From Entomortierella parvispora E1425 (taxonomy: Eukaryota > Fungi > Mortierellomycota): 64,000 nt of DNA. Below the pieces are notes generated by a model that saw only the letters and a program-made list of their open reading frames with translations, made no database searches and was not told the DNA's origin. Shown piece by piece: positions 5,041 through 18,217 of the stretch. Position 1 is the first letter of the stretch; each line of letters begins with the position of its first letter. The translations under genes and the position numbers were made by a program. The stretch covers positions 248,001 to 312,000 of the forward strand of contig BQFW01000002.1 in NCBI GenBank assembly GCA_020891255.1. Reading direction: 5' to 3'.

Positions 5041-7321
5041 CAAGGTACTAATTGCAACTTATTTTAGATAAACTTGTTTGCATGCGAGGAACTATCGTGA
5101 GAACTTCTGGAGTGAGGCCCTTGGCGACCAAAATGTCTTTCACCTGCAATACCTGCTTAGGCGTACAAACTCTGGAGTTTCCGGATGCACGATTCGTACA
5201 GCCTACAAAGTGTCACGAGGCAGGATGTAGGAGCAAGCAGTTTTCTCCGCAGCGTGGAGTCGGATACGAAACTGAAACCGTGGATTGGCAAACGATCCGG
5301 TATGTAGGCACGCCGGTGTAGTGCTCTTGCTTTGTTGCATTGCTAATCTAAACACGCACCTATGAAATTAGTCTTCAAGAAAAACTGCCAGATGATAGAA
5401 TGGACTCTGGTCGAGTGCCCAGGACGATTGAATGCGAGGTCACGAGAGAACTTGTGGATAGGGTTATCCCTGGGGATGTCGTTGAGATAACTGGCATCGT
5501 CAAAGTGGCACCATCTGAAAAAGGTATCGAGTTTGAGTAAAGTGCTTTTTTTCCTGTTGAAATTCTACGGATCTAACAATGTCCAACATTTTCTAGTGTA
5601 TTCACGAGCCAAGACCGGCAACACCATGTACCTGCTCTATATCGACGTCAACTATATCACAAAGGCTACAACCACCAAAGAAGTGGACGATGTCTATGAG
5701 GAAGAAGAAGCCGACTCAAAGGAGTCCTCCAAAGACAGTATCCAGATCACAACGAAGGACCTTTACGCGATCGAAGATGTTCATAGGCAACCTCAGCTGT
5801 TCAAGCTGATTGTCAACTCTTTCAGTCCGGCAATTTTCGGTCACGAGATGGTCAAGGCTGGGATACTGTTTGCTCTCTTTGGGGGACGCAGACGGAGCAA
5901 GACCGCATTGGACAGGACAGCCATTCGATCGGATCCTCATGTGCTAGTTGTAGGAGACCCAGGTCTTGGAAAGTCACAAATGCTATCAGCAGCCGTCAAG
6001 GTTGCTCCTCGAGGGGTCTATGTTTGCGGCAGCAGTGGAGTTTCGACAAGTGGTCTTACTGTCACCCTTGTCCGTGGAGCTGGATCGGACTATGCTCTAG
6101 AGGCCGGTGCACTCGTTCTGGGAGATCAGGGCTGCTGCTGCATTGATGAGTTTGACAAGATGACTACGGACCACAATGCCCTCTTAGAGGCGATGGAGCA
6201 GCAGTCGATCAGCATTGCCAAGGCCGGTATTATCTGCACGCTTCCGGCGAGAACAAGTGTGATTGCAGCGGCCAACCCTGTCGGAGGTCACTACAACACA
6301 TCGAAAACCGTGGGCGAGAATCTGAAGATGAACTCTGCTCTACTCTCTCGCTTCGACCTCATCTTCATTCTAATGGACAAGCCGGATGGAGAAATGGATC
6401 AGTTTCTATCGAGACATGTTATGGCCTTGCACTCTGGAAATACTGCCGATCTATCTGCTTTCAGGCCTGGTCATTCGCAGGACACCAATATGGATCTGTC
6501 ACAATTGTCTCAGAGTCAAGGCGGCCAGCGCGGAAGAAGCATCGTAAAGCCGGAAATGGATCGCCCCCTGTCCGAACGCTTACGTCTTACAGATGACGAT
6601 GACTTGGAGTTGATCCCGCTACCATTGCTTCGCAAGTATATTGCATATGCTCGGAAGTACGTGCATCCGAGACTATCACCAGAGGCCGCTTCCACACTCC
6701 AGGACTTTTATTTGATGATGAGGGCCAAGCACCGATCTCCCGATGGGACTCCAGTCACTACACGTCAACTCGAGTCGATGATCCGCATGGCGGAAGCCAA
6801 GGCTCGCATGGAACTCCGGGAGACTGTTACAAGACGGGATGCCATGGATGTGATCGAGATAATGTAGGTTCTTCCGAATACGTATTGGCGACCCCACTTT
6901 TAGTATTCTCTTATTGAGTTGCTCTCTGTTCTGACAACTCTCACAGAACCTTTAGTTTGCAAGACGCCTTCACACCTGTGGGTGGTGTCGATCGCGAGCA
7001 GAGAGGCGGCCCACCTGGGCGTGGAAAGAGCGCCAGTCTCAAGAAGTATACTTCGCTGGCCATTGCGAATATTCTGTCCCTGTTCTTATTTCTGAGCCTG
7101 ACATCATATATTTGTATTGTAGATATGTGGCGGAACTGCAACGGATTGCGCACGCCAATTCCAACAACATGTTTTCGTACGATCACCTTTACCAGGTCTT
7201 CCAGCAGCTGCAGTTGCCTGGCATCGCGGGCGGATTTCAAGGGTTTCTGGATTCCCTGAACTATCAAAACTTTTTGCTGAAGAAGGGCCCGAGATCGTAC
7301 TGTCTGGCCACAGCAATGTAA
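4038..7321 (+). CDS. MCM8: DNA helicase MCM8 (multi-exon)
   Basis: DPHVLVVGDPGLGKSQML (Walker A), CCCIDEFDKM (Walker B), LLEAMEQQSISIAKAG, GGHYNTSKTVGENLKM, LLSRFDL (Arg finger), N-terminal C4 zinc region and C-terminal winged-helix exon; this motif wording matches MCM8 rather than MCM2-7. Confidence 0.9.
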
Positions 7322-7569: not shown

Positions 7570-9084
7570 ATGACTCACTCCAAAAAGATTGTTCTCGTCA
7601 CTGGATGCACCACCGGTGGCATCGGCTACGAGACCGCCAAGGCATTTGAGAAGGTATGGTCTGAATCTGGTCTGAATCCCTCATGCAATGACGCGTCGAA
7701 TGCATCACGGAGCCGAGTTGCTGTTAACCCTGCCTCCGTCAATACAGAGTGGATGCAAGGTCTATGCTGCTGCCAGACGCTTGGATGCCATTACCGGAAT
7801 CGAAGGTACAGACCAAAACTGAAGTGCTGCTTGAGGGATGAAGCCAGAGAAGCATCGTACTGACCGTTTCGGGGTCACAATGCAACCCATTAGGTCTTGA
7901 TATTGAGAAGGTGTACATCGATGTCCTGGATGAGAAATCTATCAAGGATGCTGTGAACGTGAGTGAAATGACTCTCCTAGATATTCCGGATGTCCAGTTC
8001 TCCTAGGCTGTGCATTTAATTCTCTTTCTTCTGCTGCTCGCCCATGCTCACCATCTTCCCCCTCGCCTTCAGCACATTATTTCAAAGGAAGGCCGCATTG
8101 GTAAGCTACTTGGGTTGCATGCTATTAGCTGACGATGTGGCATGTTGTATTCCAGTCCTCCGTGGTTTAACAAGGGTCTCGCTCTCGATAGATATTCTGT
8201 TCAACAATGCCGGAATGGGTCTTGCATGCCCTATCATTGACATGTCGGTAGGTGCCGCGATTAACAAGTGGGTGCGGCCGTACAAAAAGACAGAGTCAGC
8301 GTTGTTAACACATGTTCTGTGGTTTGTCGATGAAAACAGATCGAGACCACTCGCAAGCTGCTTGATACCAATATTACCTCGGTGGTCCTGGTGTCCAAAG
8401 AGGTTGCACCCCATATGATCCGTCAAAAGTCGGGCCTGATCGTGAACGTGGGTTCAGTCACTGCGTACTTGGCCACGCCATGGGGAGGGCTCTACGCTGC
8501 CAGCAAGGCCGCTGTGCACTCACTGTCGGATGCCCTTCGCATGGAGTTGGCGCCATTCAATGTCAAGGTCTCGGTGGTCGCCCCTGGAGCCATCAAATCC
8601 AACATTGGAGACAACAACCTGAAGGCGTTCCACCTTCCTGAGAGTAAGAAGGAGAGTCTGGCTTTTGTCCAGAGGAATTGAACTCGATTGACTCAATTTT
8701 TATTTTTTCTTATTTTTTTTAGATTCCTTCTACCAGACTGTTATCAAGTACGTCCTCTCCCGCGCAAACGCATCTCAAGGTAACGCAACAGATTTCTTGA
8801 TTCTGGCAACAACAGTTCGGTTGAGACGCTCCCTAACCACATGTTTTTATTGACTTCTTGGACAACAATCAGCCCCCGGATGCACCCCTACTGCCAACTT
8901 TGCAAAATACGTTGTTGCAAAGTGCCTCAAGTCCTCGCCTCCAAAATACATCGATTACGGCACTCTGTCGAACCTCTTCCGCGTCATTCGATATGCTCCC
9001 TGGATCATTTCGGACTTCATCTTTGCAAAGAGGTTCGGGTTGGACGTGCTCCGCAAGGCTGTGAAGGACGGCAAAGTGATTTGA
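7570..9084 (+). CDS. Short-chain dehydrogenase/reductase, Ayr1-like (acyl-DHAP reductase family)
   Basis: LVTGCTTGGIG Rossmann motif, LFNNAG, VGSV and catalytic YAASK; many short exons with GT..AG introns; TGA at 9082-9084. Confidence 0.88.
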
Positions 9085-9361: not shown

Positions 9362-10469
9362 ATGAGAATCTTGTCCCTTTCCCTTGGTCTCGCTGTCGTT
9401 GCACTTGTTGCCGCTCAAGGTAAGCTGCCCCCAGATCCCCTGTTCTTGCTCACGCTTGGCTCCACAAGCTTATTCCCTTTCAATTGAATATTCTTCCGCT
9501 TTCATTTCCAGCCGATCCACTTTCGGCTAATGGCCCTCAATCCACCTACGAGTGGGCGGGCGAGAGTGATCTTGAAAATGCTCTTGATCTACAATATGAT
9601 GCTCTCTCAGAGCAGCAGTTCCGCGCCTTTTTCTTGACCTCTCACCAGGTTGCAGATTTCCAAGCAGAGGGATGCGAGAGTATTATCAACGACATCTCCA
9701 AGACGATCAAGACAGCGCTTGACGCCGCTGCAGCGATTGTCTCTCCTATCCCTGGTGTGGGTGTAATTGTGCAGTATATAAAGACTTCCTTGCATCCGTC
9801 CCTGTGGCGCTGGTCATCAGTACTCTCCGAGCCGTGATTATTGGTCTTTCTATCACTGGTGCTGGCACGGCTCTTCAGCCCATCTCCACCATATTTAATA
9901 CAGTGGAGCCACTGTTAAACAGTCTGGTCGCTTGCCGCGGTGGCGGCACCGGTCGATTGGAGATGGACGTGTCTCGATGCAGTTCCTTGGCGGATCTTTA
10001 CCGATTGACCTTGGAGGATTCGATCAAGATCAATCCAGCTTCGAACCTTCCCGCGGACGCAAGCGAGGAATTGAAACGGTTGACGACCGGTTCTTTGGCG
10101 CTTTTGGATTTGTTGTCCAAGACATCGATTGCCAAGACCAACGATGCTCTGTTGGCCATTCGACCCATCTTTGCGGGCGATCTGTTGGGAGACTACAGAG
10201 CCGAGCTGTTGCGCCTGAATCCCTCGGAGGACATTCGTAACTATGCCGAAATCTCGTTGGGTTCGATTGTGGGCTTTTCCAACTCCTTGGAGGCTTGTTT
10301 GCACGTGGCCGCAGACCCCGTGGTGGCGTTGGAGGAGCTCAACGAGGAATTGGCTGCTCAAGCAGAGGGGGATGAGTACGAAGACGAAGATAAAAAGGAC
10401 GACGAGGAAGATGATGATGAGGAGGAGGATGAGCAGCAAGTCATATGTCTGTTACAAACGAGATATTAA
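9362..10469 (+). pseudogene. Secreted acidic-tail family, copy 1 (frameshifted near 9780; ancestral stop read through)
   Basis: Signal peptide MRILSLSLGLAVVALVAAQ plus the family intron; ORF 9484-9837 and ORF 9804-10469 are in different frames; the central segment is shorter than in the paralogs; the TAA of the other copies is CAA here. Confidence 0.7.
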
Positions 10470-10870
10470 ATATATCTCACCCCATTCCGCGGCCTCTTTT
10501 GCCGCTCATCTCTCTCCGAGCTCCTTGGACCATCACGGATATGATCGTCAAAAGCTGTTTGTGATCAAGGGCAATGGTCGATCTTGGGAGGAGTAAGAAT
10601 TCTGACGTTCAGCCTAATAAAAAAAAAGGTATAGATTTTTCTGTGTTCGCAAGAAAAAAATGACACGCCCCTTGCGTCTCTACAGGGGTTGGATTGAACG
10701 GAGATGTTGGTGAAAATGTTGGAAAAGGGGGGCATTGACCTTGGTCTGTTCACACAAGGCAGGACGTCTCCTCCTGTTCATTTGTTAATAGTGTCACTCT
10801 CTTGCCCGCCTCTTATTTACCTCCTCGCTCATCATCTCTCCAAATCCATCATCCGCCTCGCCTTACTATC

Positions 10871-12068
10871 ATGAGAATCTTGTCTATTTCCCTTGGCCTC
10901 GCTGCCGTTGCACTTGTTGCCGCTCAAGGTGAGCTACCCAGATCACTTCTCATTGTTCATTCTTGCCGCCACATACTAACCCTTTTTTCAATTGCATTTT
11001 TTATTTTTTTTACTGTATCCACTTTCAGCTGATCCACTTGCGGCTAACGGACCCCAGTCCACCTTCCAGTGGGCGGGCGATAGCGATCTTGAAAGGAGTC
11101 TTTCTTTTCAATATGACGCTCTCTCGGAGCAGAAGTTCCGCGCTGCTTTCTTGGCCTCTCTTGAGGTTGCGGATTTCCACGCGGAGAGTTGCGACAGCGT
11201 TGTTTCCAGCTTCGGCGCTGCGATCAAGAATGCCCTCAGCGTCATAAGCACGTTTACCTCACCTGTCCCTGGAGTGGGTGTAGTCGTCACCTTTGTCCAG
11301 GGAATCTTGAACCATATTGTGGATATCTTGACAGGCACCTTGGTTAACGTGTCTGCATCGGCCCTAGAGCTGTTGGTCGCTACGATTCAAAGGGTGATGG
11401 CGATTGTCTTTCTCACTAATGGAGTTAGTTCAGTGCCAAACGTTTCCGCCGCGTTGGATCTTGTGATGTTCGAGCTGAAGAATGTGATCAGTTGTGAGGC
11501 CAGCGGTACCGGTAAATTGGAGGGCACCAGTATCGGACGATTGGAGGTGAACGAGGCCCGATGCAGTTATCTGGCGGATCTCTACCGAGCGTCCTTGGAG
11601 GATTCGATCAAGATCAGCCCAGCCTCAAACCTGCCCGCGGACGCGAGCGAGGAATTGAGACGGTTGATGACCGGGTCTTTGGCGGTTTTGGATTTGATGG
11701 CCAAGACTTCTATTGCCAAAACAAACGATGCTTTGTTGGCGACTCGGCCCATCTTTGCCGCCGATATTTTGGCCGAGTACAGATCCGCGCTGTTGCGTTT
11801 AAAGCCCTCGGAGGACATTCGAAGCTATGCCGATGTCTCCTTGGGTTCGATCGTCGCCTTTTCGAACTCTTTGGAGGCTTGTTTGTACGTGGCCGCGGAC
11901 CCTGTGGTGGCGTTGAAGGAGCTCAACAAGGAGTTGGCTGCTGAGGCAGCAGAGGATGGGTATGAAGACGAGGATGAAGAAGACGAGGACGAGGACGAGG
12001 ACGAGGATTACGATGAAGATGAGGATGAGGATGAGGATGAGGATGAGGATGAGGAGGATGAGCAGTAA
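10871..12068 (+). CDS. Secreted acidic-tail family, copy 2 (intact)
   Basis: ATG 10871, signal peptide MRILSISLGLAAVALVAAQ, one intron (gtgagc..tttcag), open to TAA 12068; D/E tail. Confidence 0.9.
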
Positions 12069-12443
12069 GTCCTACGTCTCTAGCAGGTGAGATGCTTCAT
12101 CTGTCTCACCGCCATATCTGCAGCCTCTTCTACCTTTCCTCTGACCCTTGAATCGCCACGATTTTCATCCTCAGAAGATGTGGAGCTATTTGTGATCAAG
12201 GGCAACAAAGTGGGGTAGGATGATCTTGGGAGGAATAAGAATCTTGACGTTCAACCTAAAAACAGGGATTAGAAAGAAAGGGGATCTTCACGAATATGTA
12301 GAAAAAGGGGCCTTTGTCCGCCCACATAAATAAAAAAAAAATCCATGGACAGAGTTTACCCTCCTGCATTTTTCTTCTTTGCACCCCTCTTTACACCCCT
12401 CTCCACACCCCTCTCAACAAACTCTCCGCTTCCCCTTGTCATC

Positions 12444-13561
12444 ATGAGAATCTTGTCTGTTTCCCTTGGCCTCGCTGCCATTGCACTTGTTGCCGCTCAA
12501 GGTGAACTACACACATTGCCTCTCTTTGTTCATGCTTGACGCCACAAACTTACGTGTATCAATTGCTTTTGTCACTACATCCACTTCCAGCTGATCCACT
12601 TGCCGCCAATGGTCCCCAGTCCACCTTCGAGTGGGCAAGTGATAGTGATCTTGAAAAGACTCTCGCTCTTCAATATGATGCTCTCTCGGAGCAGCAATTC
12701 CGCGCCACTCTCTTGAGCTCTTTTGAAGTTACAGATTTCCAGGCGGAAGGTGGTTGCGGCACCATCATTGCCGCCCTGACAACTGCGATCAACACAACTC
12801 TCACCGAAGTAGGCAATTCCTTAAATGCCATCCCTTTGGTGGATCCAATTTTGAAAGCTGTCGCCGGTAGCTTGACTCAAATCTTGAACGGCGTGGCCGG
12901 CACCGTGTCCCAGGTGACTGCGGCGGCCCTGGGGTTCGTGGTCACCACGCTGCAAACCGTACTTGGAGTCATCGGCGTAGGATCACTCGGGCCCGTGGCC
13001 GCTGCGTTGAACGCTGTGGTGTCATTGGTGAATCAGCTGGCCGGTTGTCAGGGCACCAATGTCGGACTATTGGAGGTGAACGAGGCCCGATGCGGTAATC
13101 TGGCGGATCTCTACCGATCGACCTTGGAGGAATCGATCAAGATTAACCCTGCCTTGAACCTGCCCGAGGACGCGAGCGAGGAACTGAAGCGGTTGACGAC
13201 CGGCACCTTGGCGCTTTTGGATCTAATGTCCAAGACCTCGATTGCCAAGACAAACGATGCTTTGTTGTCAATTCGACCCATCTTTGCCGCCGATCTGTTG
13301 ACCGAGTACAGATCTGCGCTGTTGCGTTTAAAGCCCTCGGAGGACATTCGAAACTATGCCGAAATCATCCTGGGAACGATCGTGGGCTCTTCCAACTCGC
13401 TGGAGGCTTGTTTGCGCGTGGCGGCCGATCCAGCGGCGGCGTTGGAGGATCTCAACGAGGAGTTGGATGAGTACGAAGACGAGGATGAGGATGAGGATTA
13501 CGATGATGAAGATGATGAAGATGATGATGATGAAGATGATGAAGATGAGAGTGAGCAGTAG
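12444..13561 (+). CDS. Secreted acidic-tail family, copy 3 (intact)
   Basis: ATG 12444, same signal exon and intron, open to TAG 13561; conserved QYDALSEQQFRA and GSSNSLEACL blocks. Confidence 0.9.
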
Positions 13562-13882
13562 GTCATATGTCTGTAACAGATGAGATAATAAATATATCTC
13601 GCCCCATACCCATGGCCTCTTCTGTCCCTCCTCTCTGAACTCCTTGAATCATCACGGTCTTCATCCTACAAGATGTGTGGCTATTGTGATCAAGGGCAAC
13701 AAAAGGGGAGTTGGATGATCTTGGGAGGGGTATGAATCCTGACGTTCAGAAGAGATCTTCACAAAAAAGGGCCTTTGTCTGCCCACATTAAAAAAAAGGA
13801 AACGGAGTTACTCTCCTGCATGTCATCCTTGAACCACCTCTCCACCTCCTTTGAACAAACTATCCTGCATTACTTTGTCATC

Positions 13883-14961
13883 ATGAGAATCTTGTCTATT
13901 TCCCTCGGCCTTGCTGCCGTTGCGCTTGCTGCCGCTCAAGGTGAACTACATCTCTCTTTGTTCATGCTTGAAACCAGACTTACGTCTTTCAATTGCTTTT
14001 TTTTTATTACCTCCACCTCCAGCTGATCCACGTGAAGCCAGTGGCCCTCAGTCCACTTACGAGTGGGCGAGTGATGGTGATCTTGAAAGGACTCTCTCTC
14101 TTCAATATGACGCTCTTTAGGAGCAGCAGTTCCAAGCTACTCTTGACCTCTTTTGAAGTTGCAGATTTCGAAGCAGAGGGTGGTTGCGACATCATCATGG
14201 TCACCCTGAAAACTATGATCGACACCAAACCCTCATCACTCTAGGCGGTGCACTGAATATCCCTGTTGCGGATCCAATGATAAAATATTTCGGCAGTGCC
14301 ATGACCTCCACCTTGAATGGGGCGGTCAACACCTTGGCTCAGTTTTGATTGCGGCTTCCCTGGGGGTGGTGCTCAACGTGGTGCAAACCATATTTGGGAC
14401 CATCGGCGGAGGGGTACTCAAGCCCGTTGCCGACGTGGTGAACACCGTGGTGTCATCGGTGAAGCAGCTGACCGGTTGTGCGGGCACCAATATCGGTCAA
14501 TTGGAGGTGAACGAGGCCCGATGCAGCAATCTGGCAGATCGACCTTGGAGGAAGCGATCAAGATCAACCCGGCCTTGAACCTACCCGTGGATGCGAGCGA
14601 GGAAGTGAGACGACTGATGACCTTCCCCTTGGCGCTTTTGGATCTGATGGCCAAGGCCTCGATCGCCGAGACAAACGATGCTCTATTGTCAATTCGATCC
14701 ATCTTTGCTGGCAATCTGTTGGCCGAGTACAGAACCGAGCTACTGAGTTTAAAGCCCTCAGAGGACATTCGCATCTATGCCGATATCACTCTGGATTCGA
14801 TCACGGGCTCTTCCAATTCTTTGGAGGCTTGTTTGCGCGTGGCGGTCGATCCCGCAGTGGCGCTGGAGGAGCTCAACGGGGAATTGGATGCAGAGGCAGA
14901 GGTGGATGAGTACGAAGACGGAGATGAAGAAGACGACGAGGAGAATGGCAGTACGCTATAG
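13883..14961 (+). pseudogene. Secreted acidic-tail family, copy 4 (nonsense codon and frameshifts)
   Basis: TAG at 14118-14120 where the paralogs have TCG/TCA; the homologous coding sequence is spread over ORFs 13993-14244, 14345-14578 and 14317-14961 in different frames. Confidence 0.85.
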
Positions 14962-15311
14962 CAGACGGGATATTAAATCTATCTCGCCCCATACCTATGG
15001 TCCCTCATCTCTTAACTATATCAGAAGGTGTTTGGCCATTTGTGATGATCAAGGGCAACAAAAGTGCGGTTTGACCATGTTGGGAGGAATAAAAATCCTG
15101 ATGTTTAGAACAAAGACACGCACCTTGTGTCTGTGCAGGGGTCAGAGAGAACAGAGATCTTCGCGAAAATGTTGAAAAAAAGGGGCGTTGACCTTGGTCT
15201 GCTCACTCAGCTCTGTTGTTGACGAAGTTACTCTCTTGTTTGTTTTCTGTTCACATCCTCGACTCCCCTCTCAACATCCCTCTCAATAAACTAACCGCAT
15301 CCCCTGTCATC

Positions 15312-16452
15312 ATGAGAATCTTGTCTATTTCCCTTGGCCTCGCTGCCGTTGCACTTGTTGCCGCTCAAGGTGAGCAATCTCTATCGCTTCTCTTTTCTTT
15401 GCACCTGCTTGCCGCCACAAACTTACGTGTATCAATTGCTTTTTTCACTACATTCACTTCCAGCTGATCCACTTGCCGCCAATGGCCCCCAGTTCACCTT
15501 CGAGTGGGCAAGTGATAGTGATCTTGAAAAGACTCTCGCTCTTCAATATGACGCTCTGTCGGAGCAGCAGTTCCGCGCCACTCTCTTGAACTCTTTTGAA
15601 GTTGCAGATTTCCAGGCGGAAGGTACCTGCGGCGCCATCATTGCCGCCCTTACAACTGCGATCAACACGACTCTCACCACTATAGGCAGTACCTTAAAGG
15701 CCATCCCTTTGGTGGATCCCCTTCTCAAAGCTATCGCCGCTAGCTTGACTCAAATCTTGAACGGCGTGGCCGGCACCGCGTCCCAGGTGACTGCGGCGGC
15801 CCTGGGGGTGGTGGTCACCACGCTGCAAACCATACTTGGAGCCATCGGCGTAGGAGCACTCGCGCCCGTTGCCGCCGTGTTGAACACCGTGGTGTCATTG
15901 GTGAAGCAGCTGGCCAGTTGTAAGGGCACCACTATCGGAAAATTGGAGGTAAACGAGGCCCGATGCGGTAATCTGGCGGATCTCTACCGATCGACCTTGG
16001 AGGAATCGATCAAGATTAACCCTGCCTTGAGCCTGCCCGAGGACGCGAGTGAGGAATTGAAGCGGTTAACGACCGGCACCTTGGCGCTTTTGGATCTAAT
16101 GTCCAAGACCTCGATTGCCAAGACAAACGATGCCCTGTTGTCAGTTCAACCCATCTTTGCTGGCGATTTGTTGGCCGAGTACAGAGCCGAGCTGTTGCGT
16201 TCAAAGCCCTCGGAGGACATTCGAAACTATGCCGAATTCACTCTGGGTTCGATCATAGGCTCTTCCAACTCGTTGGAGGCTTGTTTGCGTGTGGCGGCCG
16301 ATCCTGTGGCGGCGTTGGAGGAGCTCAACGAGGAATTGGCTATTGAGGCAGAGGAGGATGAATACGAAGATGACGACGAATACGAAGATGACGATGACGA
16401 TGAGGAGTACGATGATGATGATGATGATGACGAAGATCAGAATGAGCAGTAA
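15312..16452 (+). CDS. Secreted acidic-tail family, copy 5 (intact; closest to copy 3)
   Basis: ATG 15312, signal exon and intron, open to TAA 16452; central segment nearly identical to copy 3. Confidence 0.9.
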
Positions 16453-16868
16453 GTGAAATATCTGCAACAGACGAGATATTAAATCTATCTCGCCCCATAT
16501 CCATTCTGTCCCTTCTCACTCGGAGCTCTGCCAAAAGATGTTTTGGCTGTTGTGATCAAGAACAACACAAGTGGAGTTCGACCATCATGGGAGGAATAAA
16601 AATACTGACGTTCAACCAAGAAAAAAAAAAAAAAAAAAGAAAAGCAAAACGTATGACTACTACGGCCAAAAACAAGCACACATACGCACATATCTTGTGT
16701 CTCGGCAGGGGTCAGGTAGAACGGAGATCTTCGCGAAAATGTTGACAAAAGGGGCATTGACCTAGGTCTGTTCACAAAGACAAGGACTACCACCCCTCTT
16801 CATTTTAGTTCTGATTTGTTTTCCTATCAACATCCCTCTCAACAAACTATTCGCTTTCCCTTGTCATC

Positions 16869-17230
16869 ACGAGAACCTTGTCTATTTCCCTTGGCCTCGC
16901 CGCCGTTGTACTTGTTGCAGCTCAAGGTGAGCTACCCAGATTGCCCCTGCTTGACGCAACAAACTTTCGGGCTCTTCCAACTCTTTGGAGGCATGTTTGC
17001 GCGTGGCGGCCAATCCCGCGATGGTGCTGGAGGAGCTCAATGAGGAGTTGGCTGCGGAGGCAGAAGAGGACGAGTATGAAGATGAGGATGATGACGATGA
17101 AGATGTGGATGATGACGATGAAGATGTGGATGATGACGATGAAGATGAGGATGATGACGATGAAGATGTGGATGATGACGATGAAGATGTGGATGATGAG
17201 GATGAAGAGGACGAGCAGGGCGGGCAGTAA
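16869..17230 (+). pseudogene. Secreted acidic-tail family, copy 6 (ATG changed to ACG; large internal deletion)
   Basis: tcatcACGagaacc replaces tcatcATGagaatc; intron 1 sequence (acaaactt) is fused directly to GGCTCTTCCAACTC (GSSNSLEA), so most of exon 2 is missing. Confidence 0.85.
17081..17206 (+). repeat. 21-bp minisatellite x6 encoding D(E/V)DDD(D/E)E
   Basis: gatgWggatgatgaSgatgaa units start at 17081, 17102, 17123, 17144, 17165 and 17186. Confidence 0.9.
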
Positions 17231-18217
17231 GTAACGGCATCGGTACCAAGCAGACATGATACCTGGAGTCGTGTCATCTATATGTACGCTTGCACTGCCC
17301 AACCTCTTCGACCGCCATGTCTTTTTCTCTTGAAGGATACCAGGCAAAAAAAAAAAAAAAAAAAAAAAGGACGAACACACAGATCTCTCATCCCCCTGTT
17401 TCCTAACTGTACTCCAACGTGAAGGCGCACTGCATTCAATGTAGGCATGCGTAAATGATATCCATATTCCATCCAACTTCTCTCCCGAACACTTGAAGAG
17501 GGGGAAGAAGTCAGAAGTCTTTCTCATGAATAAACGTCGACCAACGCGTTGACGCGCTGCGCTGGACAATCATAGATCACGTGATTCAGATCGCCTTCCC
17601 CCCCCCCTTTCAAAAGATTGCGCCCCGTGTGATTTCTGGTCCCTTCTCTCAAACACTTTGATTCTTCGAGGTAGTGATCTGAGGCCACGTCACTCCGCTG
17701 GATGTGCCGGATTGCACCCATCGATCCATCAATCCATCGATCAAACCATGGAGCCCTGCAACCCGCCATTTGACATCGATTCCCCAGGACTGGACCTGAC
17801 TGGACTTGTGGAGGCTTCCGGTCATTTTTTTCGCCCATCGGCCAAACTGCTGCATCAGGACACAATCCCAATGGCTACGATTAAGAGCTGAACCCAACAT
17901 CCAACATTTCAAATCAGGACAAGAGAAAGGGAATGAATCAAAATCATCTTTGACCCAGGATCTGATAATTTCATGGCATCAGGGAGCATCATTAATCTTC
18001 ATTTCCATCGATTTATTCAATGGGGTGCCTTGTTCACTGCATTCGACTCATTGAGCAGGGAGGCCATTCAACACCCCAATCCCAACAACACGACAAACGA
18101 CATATTTGGACCAACACCTAGCAGGACATAGGACTCATCGCAACACCAAGATCATATAAGCATGATGAATCTAACGTCTTTTTCGTGCCGTTTTTGCCGT
18201 CTCTGTAGCTTATCAAA

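Follow-up and report, generated by a model that had tools for sequence, protein, structure and literature searches.

How do neighbouring genes keep most of their protein sequence in common and yet differ strongly in one central segment, and what would their products do? The question is raised by a tandem array in a 64,000-nucleotide stretch of the Entomortierella parvispora E1425 genome (contig BQFW01000002.1, positions 248,001 to 312,000; hereafter the window, C2:248001-312000 in the contig-style coordinates, C2, C11 and so on, used here for the source genome). The original prediction, made from the DNA sequence, saw in this array six secreted proteins built from a fixed scaffold, an interchangeable Cys-bracketed cassette and an acidic tail, and proposed them as an undescribed system. 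No described family accounts for these proteins, but they are better put as an undescribed protein family which, judging from sequence searches, is restricted to Mortierellaceae and spans about 10 genera. Our preferred reading, held with less than even confidence and with a mechanism inferred from sequence and structural model, is that of a secreted family in which the variable bundle would attach to lipid, membrane or hydrophobic surfaces.

An undescribed protein family of Mortierellaceae

A word-indexed search retrieved 53 relatives of the window proteins, with non-self E-values down to 1e-72, and an exhaustive profile search of 1.84 billion representatives gave 124 matches at E<=0.001, 86 of them at E<=1e-10. 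Every family match whose source is named is a hypothetical protein of Mortierellaceae (genera Entomortierella, Linnemannia, Podila, Mortierella, Dissophora, Haplosporangium, Actinomortierella, Gamsiella and Lunasporangiospora). The initial failure to recognise any known family was borne out by Pfam, Protein Data Bank (PDB) sequences, Foldseek, VIA and ESM Atlas. A Pfam scan gave nothing above threshold in copies 2, 3 and 5 of the array or in 36 family members, and searches of PDB sequences with whole-protein, cassette and C-block profiles returned either nothing or heptad-repeat and designed bundles only, coronavirus HR1 constructs among them. At the weak end of the profile search (E-values from 1e-6 to 1e-3) stands a set of unrelated bacterial, archaeal and fungal helical-repeat proteins of 600-2400 aa that align with the cassette only and carry Baculo_PEP_C- or apolipoprotein-like signals; this set was discarded. 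These weak matches, like those to PDB sequences, reflect a shared heptad-like composition and no homology.

In the family alignment, copies 2, 3 and 5 stand at full length beside 34 orthologues and paralogues; for copies 2 and 5, exon 2 alone was analysed, and copy 3 also as the stored public protein (EMPS_00941, P0001, 342 aa). All three copies have the signal peptide, the motifs, the four Cys and the acidic tail that define this unnamed orphan family in Mortierellaceae. The signal peptide ascribed to each copy was recovered as a separate exon, MRILSISLGLAAVALVAAQ, split from the mature part by an intron. The mature protein then opens with the N block as originally described (ADPLAANGPQSTF/YEWA..QYDALSEQQFRA), the motif of the family in this region being DP.AA.G.Q..Y.W, then SE.EFRA. 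Next comes the cassette, which is indeed bracketed by two Cys (C55 and C152 in mature copy 3) and counts 96 residues in copy 3, 100 in copy 2 and 96 in copy 5. Past a short linker, the conserved C block with two further Cys (EARC...SNSLEAC; C167 and C273 in mature copy 3) and the final D/E tail are likewise present. The four Cys are conserved in 90-100% of the aligned sequences. The C block is marked by the motifs C..ADLYR, PALNLP.DAS, K.SIA.TN.ALL..RPIFAADLL..YR.E.LR, SNALEACLRVAADP and ELNEEL, and its invariant polar or charged residues are R175, R200, K214, N221, R228, R240, E242, R245, N268, E271, R275 and D279.

The cassette had been called nearly uncharged, which is true of the window copies (3-8% charged residues) but not of the relatives, orthologues included (9-19%; C block 19-26%); on these sequences, the window cassettes are the local extreme of a family-wide low-charge trait. 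For most aligned members the most hydrophobic 19-mer of the protein lies in the cassette, most often in its third helix, and in the window copies this helix has a KD19 of 1.8-1.9 (1.92 in copy 3), like a membrane helix.

Tandem copies, recognised by adjacent locus tags, recur in L. gamsii, L. zychae, Podila humilis, A. wolfii and Mortierella sp. GBA35. In Linnemannia hyalina (JAHRHY010000003, L013:10001-14677), a YEATS-domain gene and a zinc-finger gene flank a three-gene array of the family (346, 335 and 404 aa), which has no synteny with the flanks of the window. E. parvispora itself has two more family loci (Table 1), whose proteins have the conserved C block and almost no acidic tail; small tandem clusters recur here as well, because the locus on C11 adjoins a decayed copy. 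Close relatives, with C blocks 64-77% identical, were also found on two soil contigs of Joint Genome Institute (JGI) metagenome sample 3300029943, L017 and L018. L017 has an intact exon 2, and L018 has the same signal exon and intron together with a frame break in the N block. The two contigs suggest an uncultured Entomortierella-like fungus with a similar array.

Two predicted four-helix bundles

An AlphaFold2 model of mature copy 3, built on the family alignment, is all-helical with 13 helices (predicted local distance difference test, pLDDT, 77.6; predicted template modelling score, pTM, 0.76); disorder is predicted for the first 15 residues and for the acidic tail. The C block modelled alone reached a pLDDT of 86. 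Four helices are predicted in the cassette (residues 55-77, 81-101, 110-127 and 133-150), in agreement with the four-helix bundle that had been proposed for it, and the mature protein as a whole is modelled as two generic up-down four-helix bundles, each bracketed by Cys, then a disordered tail. In an up-down bundle, helix 1 starts at the same end at which helix 4 finishes. Pairing of the first Cys with the second and of the third with the fourth is topologically reasonable, because each pair sits where helix 1 begins and helix 4 ends, and disulfides C55-C152 and C167-C273 could staple helix 1 to helix 4. The model has a bridge between residue 50, which adjoins Cys55, and Cys152. For an internal duplication of the two bundles, no sequence kinship was detectable with hhalign (probability 0.06).

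Both halves of the model align with many unrelated up-down four-helix bundles at Z-scores of 9-12 (maximum 11.7 in a wide VIA search), a range that is background for helical bundles according to the search tool. Among the VIA matches are designed bundles, copper-storage proteins, plant pectin-methylesterase (PMEI)/invertase inhibitors, talin rods and Tsi6. Foldseek against PDB returned nothing at E<=0.001, either for the whole model or for the C block, and ESM Atlas gave no specific match (best template modelling score, TM, by query 0.37 for shape; best cosine 0.79 for features).

A fast cassette between slowly evolving flanks

The copies of the window fall into three cassette types, represented by copy 1, by copy 2 and by copies 3, 4 and 5. 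The great difference reported between cassettes was confirmed, with 23-31% identity between types, but the flanks, said to be near-identical, share 72-78%. The cassette also evolves faster by region: among window copies, the ratio of nonsynonymous to synonymous substitution rates (dN/dS, NG86) is 0.57-1.14 for the cassette, against 0.17-0.35 for the N block and 0.21-0.42 for the C block. The predicted excess over the flanks holds in most comparisons with the intact metagenome relative L017 as well, since for three of the four copies the cassette has a dN/dS of 1.10-1.17 and the flanks 0.15-0.28; for copy 1 the cassette ratio is 0.42, with a cassette dS saturated at 1.90. Poor alignment, at about 28% identity, best accounts for the higher NG86 dS of the cassette. 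Judged by these substitution rates, purifying selection acts on the scaffold.

The youngest pair, copies 3 and 5, has uniform silent distances (0.10-0.17). Its cassettes differ by 22 replacement and 8 silent changes (ratio 1.12) and its flanks by about 24 and 21 (Fisher p = 0.095), and nearly all of its replacements are V/I, A/T, S/T, G/A or A/V swaps. Between copies 2 and 3, sliding DNA identity is 47-60% in the cassette, 75-85% in the intron and 80-92% in the C block. Such a pattern would suit rapid protein evolution as well as an older cassette set into gene-converted flanks.

Did the cassettes then diverge in place, or were they exchanged as modules? At 4-fold degenerate sites in residues that both copies share (10-45 sites per cell), the distance in the cassette is, for example, 0.57 against 0.57-0.61 in the flanks for copies 1 and 2, and 0.70 against 0.68-0.97 for copies 1 and 3. 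As these distances agree, the cassette is as old as the flanks, and therefore no swapping of modules is needed. The cassettes are moreover collinear and 91-104 aa long in 36 out of 36 aligned family members, which does not support the adjective 'interchangeable'. Scaled to 4-fold sites, the replacement rate of the cassette is about 1.2-1.6 times the silent rate, on small counts. FastTree trees, which hinted at an older cassette, are discordant, the cassette of copy 1 joining the metagenome protein P0006 and the C blocks of the window being monophyletic; a more careful cassette tree did not resolve. Trans-species cassette lineages combined with gene-converted flanks were considered and rejected, since the approximately unbiased (AU) test does not reject monophyly (p = 0.285) and the 4-fold distances are equal.

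What is constrained in the cassette is its length, its helicity and a small hydrophobic/hydroxyl alphabet, not particular residues. A ratio at or above 1 in a foldable domain fits a mixture of constrained and positively selected sites, and diversifying selection on the cassette is plausible from the sequence comparisons.

Possible functions of the variable bundle

In the preferred reading, the protein would be exported, and its conserved bundle and acidic tail would provide solubility and/or a hold on a cationic partner (the chitosan-rich wall, Ca2+). The variable bundle, which might open in the manner of an exchangeable apolipoprotein, would be the working face towards lipid, membranes or hydrophobic surfaces and would act by its bulk amphipathic or hydrophobic character, not by specific residues; paralogues with differing cassettes could cover different targets or escape recognition. 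Proteins whose fitness is set by bulk amphipathic character are typically binders of lipids, membranes or surfaces, such as exchangeable apolipoproteins and HsbA/Mp1p-type proteins, and a slow base joined to a bundle that changes at the silent-site rate usually marks an interface with other organisms or surfaces.

Comparison with known binders of this kind gives likenesses of form. HsbA/Mp1p-type proteins (PF12296) are also secreted fungal all-alpha bundles, of about 100-150 residues, with a probable hydrophobic target and often in several copies, but the orphan family differs from them by its two bundles, four conserved Cys and acidic tail, and PF12296 has no match at E<=1 in copies 2, 3 and 5 or at E<=0.1 in the 36 members. 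Exchangeable apolipoproteins (ApoLp-III; ApoA/E) and Baculo_PEP_C likewise have amphipathic up-down helices of low-complexity A/L/V/T/S/Q/N composition. ApoLp-III, however, has five helices and no disulfide staple, whereas the orphan family has four helices per bundle and a bracketing Cys pair. Profiles of apolipophorin III (PF07464) and apolipoprotein (PF01442) gave no match, 1aep appearing only at a Foldseek E-value of 1.2, and Baculo_PEP_C (PF04513, threshold 38 bits) gave 10.6 bits for copy 3 (E = 0.62) and an E-value of 0.031 in one of the 36 members. A saposin-like domain has about 80 residues and six Cys in three nested disulfides; here the four Cys are spaced about 97 and 106 residues apart, and no saposin profile matches. 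Hydrophobins (PF01185/PF06766) do not fit either, with their eight-Cys pattern against four Cys and an all-alpha model.

Hydrophobins are commonly described as restricted to Dikarya. In the present genome, PF06766 (class II hydrophobin) matches at C5:1617035-1617226, C16:28539-28703, C15:166452-166616 and C8:2982455-2982565 (best E = 1.4e-20), and PF12296 matches at C11:265834-266172 (E = 5.5e-16). The idea that the orphan family stands in for missing hydrophobins is weakened by these class II hydrophobin-like and HsbA genes.

Several points weigh against lipid, membrane or surface binding by the variable bundle. All structural matches are at the noise level of helical bundles, and no function can be read from the fold; signal cleavage and the disulfides are read from sequence and model topology only; a dN/dS near 1 would equally fit a cassette that is a weakly constrained spacer; the strong conservation of polar residues in the C block hints at a specific partner beyond this account; and, with class II hydrophobin-like and true HsbA genes elsewhere in the genome, a surface role fills no gap.

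A first, rather unlikely alternative is a membrane-inserting toxin or antimicrobial on the model of colicin-type or ClyA/Hbl-type alpha-pore formers, in which a hidden hairpin of the cassette (helices 3-4) enters the membranes of competitors, grazers or hosts and an arms race drives the diversity. Alpha-pore toxins (colicin pore domain, ClyA/Hbl/Ahl/Xax) are indeed soluble bundles that bury a very hydrophobic helix or hairpin and diversify rapidly, and the KD19 of cassette helix 3, the cassette dN/dS at or above 1 and the divergence of the tandem paralogues agree with such a role, which explains the fast evolution better than our preferred reading does. The profile of the cassette also resembles heptad-repeat fusion and coiled-coil sequences, and weak structural alignments were obtained with AhlC, XaxA, AhlB and Hbl-B at Z-scores of 7-9.7, which are nevertheless noise-level for helical bundles. 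The same helices are charged in many orthologues, a Cys staple across the bundle would limit large refolding, and Pfam scans of the window copies and the 36 members gave no match to a toxin family profile. ClyA/Hbl/Ahl/Xax toxins are elongated bundles with a hydrophobic head or beta-tongue and form oligomeric pores. The orphan protein is much smaller than ClyA-type toxins, and oligomerisation has no support, a homodimer prediction speaking neither for nor against it.

Less probable again is a variable wall coat, in which the tail and the conserved bundle would sit on the chitosan-rich wall of hyphae or spores and the exposed variable bundle would have diversified to alter the surface or to dodge predators, mycoparasites or plant receptors. 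Variant surface proteins typically join a conserved base to a variable distal helical bundle, the poly-D/E tail is kept family-wide at variable length, the cassette has sequons and much Ser/Thr, and the genes turn over by tandem birth and death. Yet the proteins have no glycosylphosphatidylinositol (GPI) signal or known wall-anchoring motif, the paralogues on C11 and at the second C2 locus are nearly tail-less, and binding to chitosan is a conjecture from general knowledge of zygomycete walls.

We consider equally doubtful that the C bundle binds a defined partner (an enzyme, as in PMEI, or a metal) and that the cassette is a weakly constrained, near-neutral accessory domain free of diversifying selection. 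A specific binder or inhibitor would be in keeping with the abundance of invariant polar and charged residues in the C block and with a cassette dN/dS of about 1 and not clearly higher. PMEI/invertase inhibitors, which are also secreted four-helix bundles and whose four Cys form two disulfides, rank with copper-storage bundles among the best matches of both halves at Z-scores of 9-10 (1x8z and 1rj1 for PMEI, at 8.8-10.1, no higher than the bundle background; Atlas TM 0.61 by target). However, the Cys pattern is unlike that of PMEI, a plant family with one disulfide in an N-terminal hairpin and one in the bundle, whereas the orphan Cys stand at bundle start and end and there is no N-terminal hairpin disulfide; PF04043 has no match in the window copies or the 36 members, and the Cys-rich core of copper-binding bundles is absent. 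Conservation of cassette length, helicity and composition over about 10 genera would also be needless for a spacer.

That the array is a decaying, largely non-functional repeat, its open reading frames (ORFs) being without present function, is very improbable: three of the six units are dead, but scaffold dN/dS is 0.15-0.42 between paralogues and against the metagenome relative, copies 2, 3 and 5 have held their frames open at silent distances of 0.1-0.7, five of the five copies that have both intron boundaries retain their splice sites, and the family is conserved across Mortierellaceae.

The most far-reaching version, which we regard as improbable, is a previously unrecognised module of fungal surface or secreted diversity, in which a conserved helical base with a polyanionic tail would dock on the chitosan-rich wall or a target and display a disulfide-stapled hydrophobic bundle under diversifying selection across tandem paralogues. 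If true, the family would amount to a helical counterpart of variant surface proteins or polymorphic toxins for dealings with bacteria, grazers or plants; if the protein is merely a loosely constrained structural one, the finding comes down to a lineage-specific family of the ordinary kind. Among the fungi of soil and those associated with roots, Mortierellaceae are some of the commonest; they host endobacteria, and to our knowledge almost nothing is known of their secreted proteins. The family offers a testable candidate for how they condition surfaces, carry lipids or attack competitors, and its four-helix bundles form a natural series in which near-neutral sequence change is tolerated. The observation is real and beyond chance and of moderate interest; it would count as evidence of a new kind of system only once a function is shown.

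Organisation and turnover of the array

The six units announced by the original prediction are all present on the forward strand, but only copies 2, 3 and 5 are intact (Table 1). They follow each other at a spacing of 1.43-1.58 kb. In each unit, exon 1 (58 nt) codes for the signal peptide and the opening base of an Ala codon; a GT..AG intron (89-100 nt) separates it from exon 2, which holds the whole mature protein from ADPLAANG through the stop codon. For copy 3 the public model EMPS_00941 has the identical exon join, and exon 2 is 100% identical to the NCBI entry. The array has grown by unequal crossing-over and undergoes birth-and-death turnover: with three live genes and three dead ones (one recently disabled, two wrecks), it shows the ordinary history of a tandem family.

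Table 1. Coordinates of the array, of its parts and of the other family loci (window positions unless a contig is given)
Feature	Position	Strand	Remarks
Tandem array	9362-17230	+	six head-to-tail units
Copy 1, probable pseudogene	9362-10469	+	exon 1 9362-9419, intron 9420-9511, exon 2 from 9512
Copy 2, intact	10871-12068	+	exon 1 10871-10928, intron 10929-11028, exon 2 11029-12068
Copy 3, intact, EMPS_00941	12444-13561	+	exon 1 12444-12501, intron 12502-12590, exon 2 12591-13561
Copy 3 variable cassette	12755-13048	+	Cys55-Cys152 of mature protein
Copy 3 conserved C-terminal bundle	13091-13465	+	Cys167 to LNEEL; most of the family-invariant residues
Copy 3 poly-acidic tail	13466-13558	+	D/E with interspersed Tyr; GAT/GAG/GAC triplet repeat; predicted disordered
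Copy 4, pseudogene	13883-14961	+	cassette type C; from three-frame translation
Copy 5, intact	15312-16452	+	exon 1 15312-15369, intron 15370-15463, exon 2 15464-16452
Copy 6, start-less truncated remnant	16869-17230	+	signal exon and intron start joined to 3' end
Non-coding blocks	12187-12251, 13682-13746, 15041-15105, 16548-16612; also 10657-10731, 15110-15184, 16680-16754		
Second family locus, same genome	C11:1963536-1964297	-	broken neighbour at 1965326-1965715
Third family locus, same genome	C2:3974723-3975457	-	conserved C block

Among the intact copies, copy 2 has a cassette of type B with two N-x-S sequons and the longest D/E tail. The cassettes of copies 3 and 5 are of type C and 80% identical to each other, that of copy 3 containing 3 charged residues. 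The tails of the live copies are GAT/GAG/GAC microsatellites, and their length is therefore free to slip.

Copy 1 changes reading frame near 9799-9803, and its stop codon is changed from TAA to CAA, extending the frame by 10 residues. The source assembly combines Nanopore and Illumina reads (PMC8759367). Copy 1 is probably a real pseudogene rather than an error of assembly polishing, because its cassette has also lost about 12-16 codons, exactly where the frame breaks, compared with its nearest relative on metagenome contig L018. Copy 4, whose DNA is 60-90% identical to that of copies 3 and 5, has at least 3 frameshifts as well as in-frame stops. In copy 6, ACG replaces the ATG start codon, the splice acceptor is lost, and a deletion fuses the intron start to the last approximately 80 codons (SNSLEAC... 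and tail). Its tail has recently been lengthened by a 21-nt tandem repeat (17076-17208; 6.3 copies, 96% matches) that encodes DEDVDDD units. Long antisense ORFs rich in Ile, Leu and Ser run over the acidic tails (9915-10439, 16201-16467 and 16882-17569, all on the reverse strand); they are by-products of the GAT/GAG repeats and no genes.

Upstream of the array lie an MCM helicase gene (5533-6867) and an intron-split short-chain dehydrogenase gene (8044-8681), housekeeping neighbours with no apparent link to the array and no hint as to its function. Finally, two conserved non-coding blocks of 65-75 nt, 65-83% identical, stand about 120-250 nt 3' of the stop codons in several copies (Table 1), and may be 3' untranslated region (3'-UTR) or terminator elements, or elements upstream of the next copy.

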